This document shows positions 25,200 to 25,560 of a DNA stretch of 64,000 nt, in pieces. Position numbers and translations under genes: made by a program. Position 1 is the stretch's first letter. Every line of letters begins with the position of its first letter. This DNA is from Hypanus sabinus (lineage: Eukaryota): assembly GCF_030144855.1 (NCBI RefSeq), contig NC_082727.1:42656001-42720000 (forward strand), in the 5' to 3' direction. Below the pieces are notes generated by a model. The model saw only the letters and a list, made by a program, of their open reading frames with translations, made no database searches and had not been told where the DNA came from.

Positions 25200-25560
25200 G
25201 CGAGTTGGATCGGTTACCAGTACAACTGTCAACCTGTTCTTTGATTTTTAAGGCAACTTCAAACCTGTCCTGACGAGGTTTCCTCCGGCTGCAAAGAGTG
25301 CGAGGCGGGGCGGACTACCTGCACGTTAATTAACGTCTTTTCCCTTTCTCGGATTCATCACAAATAAAGCGAGGGTTTGTTCAGACCGCCTGAGAATTTG
25401 CATGTCTGAAGAGGCATCAAAGGAAAGATAATAAGCAAACAGCGGGGGCTAGTTCGAACTAATTAAAGGCATCAATGAAATGCTTTGGGAATCGGCAAAG
25501 CTGCTAATCGTTGGCGCCGTCAGGTCTGTGTGTGCCCGCTATAGTCGAGGCTGTACCTGG
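25200..25560. promoter_or_regulatory. Candidate BMP/Wnt/POU-responsive enhancer
   Basis: TGGCGCC-gtcag-GTCTG at 25512-25528, CATCAAAGG at 25415-25423, CTTTGAT at 25239, ATTTGCAT at 25396-25403, AGATAA at 25426, CTAATT at 25459, all in repeat-free CpG-rich DNA. Confidence 0.65.

Follow-up and report, generated by a model that had tools for sequence, protein, structure and literature searches.

The stingray Vent locus and its distal non-coding block

The Vent genes are classic direct targets through which ventral BMP and Wnt8 signals are read; to our knowledge, hardly any dissection of their control logic exists outside the proximal promoters of frogs. The window analyzed here, a 64,000-nucleotide stretch of the Hypanus sabinus genome, contains two stingray Vent homeobox genes, a divergent paralogue (gene A) and a vent1-like gene (gene B), which have in common an intron at homeodomain position 44/45 (Table 1). 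The translation of gene B is identical to the H. sabinus vent1-like isoform X2 (P0009). Between the genes, with gene A 9 kb upstream of it, lies a non-coding block of about 220 bases (the distal block). A first-pass annotation of the DNA placed it 5.5 kb upstream of gene B, in agreement with the 5.47 kb measured from the element to the ATG.

Retroelement relics are found in the window at 22335-24746, 35600-36200, and 41400-42800. These include an ORF resembling the tail of a reverse transcriptase (22335-22742), GIY-YIG/Penelope-like ORFs (23738-24465 and 41803-42755), and numerous copies of a short SINE-like family. A masked run of N at 54776-54931 was left untouched. The promoter of gene A has a TCF core, CTTTGATG, at 10387-10394, inside a longer run (CCTTGCTTTGATGT) that is kept in Callorhinchus. 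This promoter (10225-10490) and that of Callorhinchus gene 1 (1660-1960 of locus L004) share CCTTGCTTTGATGT, CATATTTACT, and a CATAAATA-like TATA. The GGCGCC near 10290 in the gene A promoter is TGGTGC in the chimaera and is therefore not conserved.

Direct reading of 25100-25700 located all eight motifs listed by the first-pass annotation at the positions it had given, including TGGCGCC at 25512-25518 followed, after 5 nt, by GTCTG at 25524-25528. With GGCGCC at 25513-25518, this sequence has the GC half-site, the exact 5-nt gap, and the Smad4 (Medea) half-site GTCT(G) of a bipartite BMP response element (BRE). The TCF site reads CATCAAAGG at 25415-25423, and one listed motif, CTTTGAT at 25239, is outside the core block. 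The run ATCAATGAA was absent from the list; we infer that it may be assignable to an HMG/Sox-type factor.

GGCGCC-N5-GTCT occurs once in the 64 kb, compared with 0.01 expected from shuffles, and the looser GRCGNC-N5-GTCT also occurs once (0.13 expected). Single motifs are commonplace in the window, with 12 octamers (6 expected) and 10 copies of CTTTGATS (8 expected). By cluster statistics that are post hoc and given little weight, the motif set having been chosen from 25200-25560 itself, 25354-25555 is the sole place in the window to bring all six motif types together in 160 bp; the next best, 20246-20444, reaches four, and the maximum in 300 first-order Markov sequences of 64 kb was three (223 times), four (74), five (3), or six (0/300). 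Because the clustering was assessed post hoc, we used conservation as independent evidence.

Table 1 Features of the stingray Vent locus (window coordinates) and positions of the distal element in the other cartilaginous fishes (coordinates of each locus)
Feature	Coordinates	Strand	Remarks
Gene A (divergent Vent paralogue)	10484-16533	+	ATG 10484; first homeobox part ends 11576; last exon ends 16533
Core conserved non-coding element (distal Vent module)	25329-25545	.	Cross-species identity; no repeat, ORF, or Rfam match
Upstream CAGAC	25382-25386	+	Hypanus and Pristis only; invariant columns 0/5
Octamer ATTTGCAT (25396-25403) abutting Smad box GTCTG (25404-25408), GTCTG(A)	25396-25409	+	14-nt invariant run
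TCF/LEF site GGCATCAAAGG (CTTTGATG on minus strand)	25413-25423	-	Invariant in Hypanus, Pristis, Heptranchias, Callorhinchus
GATA site AGATAA	25426-25431	+	AGATA invariant
Homeodomain (Vent-type) site CTAATTA	25459-25465	+	CTAATT at 25459-25464; kept in elasmobranchs, deleted in Callorhinchus
ATCAATGAA, HMG/Sox-like	25471-25479	+	9-nt invariant run, five species
Bipartite BMP-response element GGCGCC-N5-GTCTG	25513-25528	+	Unique in window; half-sites and spacing invariant, five species
Gene B proximal promoter module (inverted paralogue)	30784-30916	+	Reverse match; collinear nine-sequence alignment
Promoter B BRE, CAGAC	30784-30788		Followed by 5-nt spacer
Promoter B BRE, GGAGCC	30794-30799		
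Promoter B CTAAATTAG	30844-30852		
Promoter B TTATCT	30880-30885		
Promoter B CTTTGAAG	30889-30896		
Promoter B ATGGAAAT	30908-30915		
Promoter B TATA-like CATAAATTAA	30934-30943		ATG 30989 comes 46 nt later
Gene B (vent1-like)	30989-32210	+	Exon 1 from ATG 30989; exon 2 31348-31577; exon 3 31884-32210
Pristis (L001) BRE	6004 of locus		4.0 kb upstream of ATG
Rhinoraja (L008) element	4161-4415 of locus		5.7 kb upstream of ATG
Heptranchias (L003) BRE	5321 of locus		4.7 kb upstream of ATG
Rhincodon (L007) BRE	3951 of locus		6.0 kb upstream of ATG
Callorhinchus (L004) BRE	7538 of locus		2.5 kb upstream of ATG

Conservation of the distal block in cartilaginous fishes

Loci of gene B orthologues, with 10-kb flanks each, were compared from Pristis pectinata (L001), Leucoraja erinacea (L002), Heptranchias perlo (L003), Callorhinchus milii (L004), Lepisosteus oculatus (L005), Xenopus laevis (L006), Rhincodon typus (L007), and Rhinoraja longicauda (L008). 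The distal element is present in six species including Hypanus, among them batoids, sharks, and a chimaera, with its orientation kept and at 2.5-6 kb upstream of the gene B orthologue. Five of these (Hypanus, Pristis, Heptranchias, Rhincodon, and Callorhinchus) make up the alignment described below, and Rhinoraja was compared besides. Over 25329-25545, identity to Hypanus is 92.6% in Pristis, 87.1% in Heptranchias, 81.6% in Rhincodon, and 67.3% in Callorhinchus, while the flanks of the core are 60-78% identical or unalignable. The entire intergenic region of the sawfish can be aligned at ~70-78% (core 92.6%), and the flanks in Heptranchias are at ~60-67% (core 87.1%). In the whale shark, local alignment is restricted to the distal block. 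Three blocks are alignable in the chimaera between the genes and upstream of the gene B promoter, of which the distal block is the strongest (E=2e-25, versus 8e-11 and 8e-5). Among the results that would refute its reading, the first-pass annotation had named a lack of conservation among chondrichthyans, and the comparison clearly shows the opposite: the block is a real, discrete conserved non-coding element that extends from chimaeras to rays.

Constraint within the block is concentrated on the motifs, where 41 of 50 columns are invariant, compared with 84 of 167 at other positions (Fisher p=7e-5). The runs that are invariant in the five species are ATTTGCATGTCTGA, GGCATC, AAAGG, AGATA, CAGCGG, ATCAATGAA, GGCGCC, and AGGTCTG, and the 14-nt octamer and SBE run is intact in Rhinoraja too. 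For the TCF site, CATCAAAG is kept in Rhinoraja and there is a 1-nt insertion in Rhincodon. The BRE spacers in the five species (GTCAG, ATCAG, ACAAG, ATGAG, and GCCAG) are constant in length and variable in three of five letters. Spacing between sites is also kept, with 117, 117, 117, 116, and 111 nt from octamer to BRE in the five species and 11 nt from TCF to GATA throughout, including a gene-less element of gar described below. These motifs, the constraint on them, and the orthology across six species are direct observations.

Other parts of the motif set are more labile. Neither CAGAC at 25382 nor CTAATT at 25459 is kept in the chimaera, and CTTTGAT at 25239 is absent already at sawfish distance. 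The letter after GGCGCC is A in three of the five species, and Hypanus and Callorhinchus have GGCGCCG. In Rhinoraja, an 8-bp deletion takes out the GC half-site and the spacer of the BRE, with GTCTG and the remaining block conserved. At least one lineage can thus do without the BRE. The distal block of Leucoraja was not found within 10 kb upstream, in a region with many repeats, and both loss and displacement are possible.

Several other conserved blocks occur at the locus. About 3.8 kb 3' of gene A, 20285-20437 matches Callorhinchus L004 5096-5244 (E=8e-11). Only 4 nt separate the half-sites in its GGCGCC-N4-GTCTG, which in the stingray has CAGAC in front of it, and the block also includes GATCAAAG, which resembles a TCF site, and AAATGCAAATT, which is invariant. 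This block is likely to be a further Smad/Oct-responsive element. The small block 26411-26463, which is conserved in sawfish, sharks, and chimaera (L004 8335-8387), has GTCTAATGCAAAT, where Smad box and octamer are fused just as they are in the distal element, and then an invariant ATTTACAAT within TTAATCGATTTACAATT. At ~1.7 kb 3' of gene B, the block 33930-34040 is conserved in all five species compared and has a palindromic Smad box (GTCTAGAC), 3 nt, and TGGCGCC; in the stingray, which has GACTAGAC, the two sites are joined by a 3-bp deletion.

Paralogy with the Vent proximal promoter

A BLAST search within the window matched 25395-25528 of the distal block, in reverse, to the proximal promoter of gene B at 30784-30916 (67.4% identity over 135 nt, E=6e-12), and the block also matches the promoters of gene B orthologues by BLAST. 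In multiple alignments, the distal element is collinear with the promoters of the gene B orthologues, Callorhinchus gene 3, gar vent1, and X. laevis vent1. BLAST of the 10 kb upstream of Xenopus vent1 gave no match to the distal or promoter block, and the homology to frog was seen by direct reading and multiple alignment.

The order of sites on the plus strand of promoter B is CAGAC-N5-GGAGCC, CTAAATTAG, GTCTG, TTATCT, CTTTGAAG, ACATGGAAAT, the TATA-like CATAAATTAA, and the ATG. When reversed, the distal block reads CAGAC-N5-GGCGCC, TTTAATTAG, TTATCT, CTTTGATG, and CAGACATGCAAAT, and the X. laevis vent1 promoter has CAGAC-tcact-GGAGCC, TTAATTAG, TTATC, CCTTTGATG, and TATAAAA. The TCF site of the distal block (CTTTGATG) is thus the counterpart of CTTTGAAG in promoter B and CCTTTGATG in Xenopus, and its homeodomain site (CTAATTA) that of TAAATTAG and TTAATTAG, respectively. 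CAGAC-N5-GGAGCC, the lower-affinity form of the Smad1/5 site and one that overlaps the frog Oaz element TGGAGC, is found in promoter B of all five cartilaginous fishes examined and in Xenopus vent1, and the gar vent1 promoter has AGAC-N5-GGCGCC together with ATGCAAAT. The homology of the distal block to the promoter module is observed directly. The paired sites differ in strength: high-affinity GGCGCC with perfect TCF and octamer sites in the distal copy, versus lower-affinity GGAGCC, CTTTGAAG, and ATGGAAAT, which the promoter copy has in every species (pairs GGCGCC and GGAGCC, CTTTGATG and CTTTGAAG, ATGCAAAT and ATGGAAAT).

The distal block aligns with the promoter module and has its order of sites; TATA and adjoining Vent coding sequence are lacking. 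No TATA is present in the elasmobranch distal copies, and the Callorhinchus copy has a TATA-like CACATAAAC where promoters have CACATAAAT. In those element-bearing loci that were searched by tblastn with six Vent proteins (E<=1), the minus strand left of the element had no Vent coding relic. Because it is without an elasmobranch TATA and without a Vent-like coding relic, the distal block is best classed as a paralogue of the Vent promoter module and not as a Vent promoter. The distal and promoter copies are syntenic in chimaera and elasmobranchs, indicating that the duplication is older than their split, which took place roughly 400 million years ago or more.

Additional copies of the module are present in other species. 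A third Vent gene of Callorhinchus (L004 15432-16699), on the opposite, minus strand, is headed by the same promoter module, and a truncated copy that lacks the BRE is located at L004 14408-14492. No counterpart of this third gene was found in the 64-kb stingray window. In gar, KNDC1 precedes vent1 on the strand of that gene, and exon 3 of vent1 recurs 3.6 kb after it (L005 14905-15309, 91% protein identity). Another 1.2 kb further is a gene-less element (L005 16516-16626) in the orientation of the distal block; it has CATCAAAG, followed at 11 nt by a GATA site, and its GGCGCC-N5-GTCTG is 96 nt away from the TCF site. The 21 kb of gar locus covered here hint that the inverted distal copy is possibly older still.

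The module has been dissected in frogs. Xenopus PV.1A no longer responds to BMP4/Oaz once its CAGA boxes or its "Oaz response element" TGGAGC have been mutated, and a TAAT between -136 and -103 mediates its activation by Xvent-2 (PMC3153937). The BRE of Xvent-2B lies at -243/-191, and the beta-catenin response requires CTTTGAT, which is located at -76/-70 in this promoter and at -65/-59 in that of Xvent-1B (PMC3033397). The Smad1 MH1 domain recognizes GGAGCC directly, though less strongly than GGCGCC, and changing the former into the latter increases BMP responsiveness; in Smad1/5 ChIP peaks, the preferred and enriched gap to GTCT is 5 bp (PMC3203580). The CAGAC-N5-(T)GGAGCC of the stingray promoter is thus the frog BRE plus ORE, and the distal block its paralogue with the stronger GGCGCC.

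Probable regulatory role of the distal block and comparison with known systems

We consider the distal block to be, with fair probability, a promoter-derived enhancer of the Vent cluster that integrates BMP (Smad1/5-Smad4), Wnt (TCF), POU-V, and GATA inputs and, in elasmobranchs, Vent autoregulation. Since the block is homologous to the promoter module dissected in Xenopus, support for BMP and Wnt input is much stronger than motif matching alone would give. The element would have originated as an inverted duplicate of the control region of a Vent proximal promoter and been retained without a gene of its own since before the chimaera-elasmobranch split. The predicted ligand of GGCGCC-N5-GTCTG is a pSmad1/5-Smad4 complex, for which the octamer has an additional Smad box fused to it; TCF/beta-catenin would act at CATCAAAGG, a POU-V/Oct factor at ATTTGCAT, a GATA factor at AGATAA, and Vent proteins, in elasmobranchs only, at CTAATTA. 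The predicted output is transcription on the ventral side, under BMP and Wnt8 control, of gene B (5.5 kb downstream) and perhaps gene A as well. The binding factors, the direction of the effect, and the gene acted upon are inferred. The first-pass annotation had proposed a compact ventral-patterning enhancer, and this claim stands in part: conservation and homology to the promoter module speak for it, whereas the lack of deep conservation in three of its motifs, the deletion of the GC half-site in a skate, and a competing promoter reading count against it.

In that competing reading, the main rival, the block is an orphan or alternative core promoter on the minus strand, which would produce a non-coding or unannotated transcript leftwards from ~25390 and affect the Vent genes indirectly, by transcriptional interference or divergent transcription. 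In its favor, the collinearity of the block with Vent promoters is in an orientation that points along the minus strand, and its conservation runs ~70 nt past the promoter-homologous part, on the side of the transcript start. However, the TATA-like CACATAAAC that the Callorhinchus copy retains in place of CACATAAAT is missing at that position in elasmobranchs. To the left of the element, no homeobox or Vent N-terminal relic was detected on the minus strand in the element-bearing loci searched (tblastn, six Vent proteins, E<=1), no ORF of at least 70 amino acids lies over the block or to its left on that strand, and TE relics fill 23.7-24.7 kb of the window. Because the distal block is promoter-derived, a promoter role is conceivable, but we regard it as unlikely.

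A function as a BMP-dependent silencer, acting through Smad-Schnurri and the N5-GTCTG grammar, or as an architectural element such as an insulator, seems quite improbable. In flies, the silencer consensus, with Schnurri, is GRCGNC(N5)GTCT, which GGCGCC-N5-GTCTG fits exactly, and the activator consensus is GGCGCCA(N4)GNCV, whose GGCGCCA is replaced by GGCGCCG in Hypanus and Callorhinchus (PMC7669266). The homologous sites of Xenopus Vent promoters, however, activate on BMP4 (PMC3153937, PMC3033397). Sites for TCF, Oct, and GATA factors, such as those next to the BRE, give activating input to Vent genes. The insulator variant is weakened by the position of the key central letters of a CTCF site, which would sit in the variable spacer. 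A CTCF site overlapping the BRE was ruled out on these species-variable critical positions. The comparison used the generally known CTCF consensus. Least credible, and essentially eliminated by the sequence evidence, is a chance cluster of motifs in neutral or repeat-derived DNA, or a conserved structured RNA. Single motifs are frequent and the motif set was chosen after viewing, and cartilaginous-fish genomes evolve slowly, so that much of the intergenic DNA of ray and sawfish aligns at ~70-78%; yet the block is conserved to the chimaera, where little else between the genes aligns, the constraint is specific to the motifs, and only this block aligns locally in the whale shark. Repeat origin was ruled out because no repeat family of the window covers 25200-25560, with TE relics ending near 24746, and because the sole other match of the block in the window is promoter B. 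A structured RNA was ruled out by the absence of an Rfam match over the block and by an unfavourable RNAalifold covariation term (+2.64 kcal/mol), with compensatory change in just 3 of 57 pairs.

If the distal block is a promoter-derived enhancer, the high-affinity sites of the distal copy and the lower-affinity sites that the promoter has in every species suggest that the two copies may read different signal levels. A more speculative version, which we put forward tentatively and with more doubt than confidence, is that a Vent paralogue of opposite orientation became extinct and left its promoter behind as the block, exapted as a high-affinity sensor of BMP, Wnt, and POU-V input, and that the pair it forms with the promoter would read the ventral BMP gradient at two thresholds. 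Given the orphan element in gar, the two-copy arrangement may be gnathostome-wide.

The grammar of the frog promoters (Smad box with GGAGCC, TAAT, GATA, TCF, and TATA) is common to rays, sharks, chimaera, and gar, and a few kb upstream the cartilaginous fishes retain a second, inverted copy of the module that has no gene but stronger consensus sites. Targeted word searches of the open-access literature, as distinct from a full review, returned no distal Vent element in cartilaginous fishes and no such promoter paralogy. As a type, a BMP-responsive Vent control region is well known; what stands out here is an old duplicate of the promoter module that is inverted, lacks a gene, and has sites of higher affinity. 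For evo-devo, the 220-bp element provides a mutational handle on the integration of BMP, Wnt, and POU-V inputs, and with the promoter a natural pair of high and low affinity for models in which morphogens are read at thresholds. The skate that lacks the GC half-site is a ready-made natural comparison.

The distal block resembles the proximal promoters of the Xenopus Vent genes (Xvent-2B, Xvent-1B, and PV.1A) in having common sites in the same order and at similar spacing, and it aligns base by base, reversed, with promoter B of the stingray and with that of X. laevis vent1. Unlike these promoters, it is inverted, is located 5.5 kb from the gene, and has neither an elasmobranch TATA nor coding sequence behind it; it also has a palindromic GGCGCC for (T)GGAGCC and a perfect octamer and TCF site where promoter B has ATGGAAAT and CTTTGAAG. 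With the Drosophila BMP-SE and the vertebrate GC-SBE/5 bp/SBE composite it shares, in sequence, an exact GGCGCC, the 5-nt spacer, and GTCTG. It differs from the Drosophila BMP-AE (GGCGCCA(N4)GNCV), since the required A is present in only three of five species, and from bipartite BMP response elements generally in the loss of the GC half in one skate. Shadow or distal enhancers can derive from duplicated promoters. In sequence organization, the distal block is like such enhancers in being a second copy of promoter control logic a few kb away that has long been kept alongside the promoter copy, and unlike them in its inverted orientation and in the systematic contrast between high-affinity distal and lower-affinity proximal sites.
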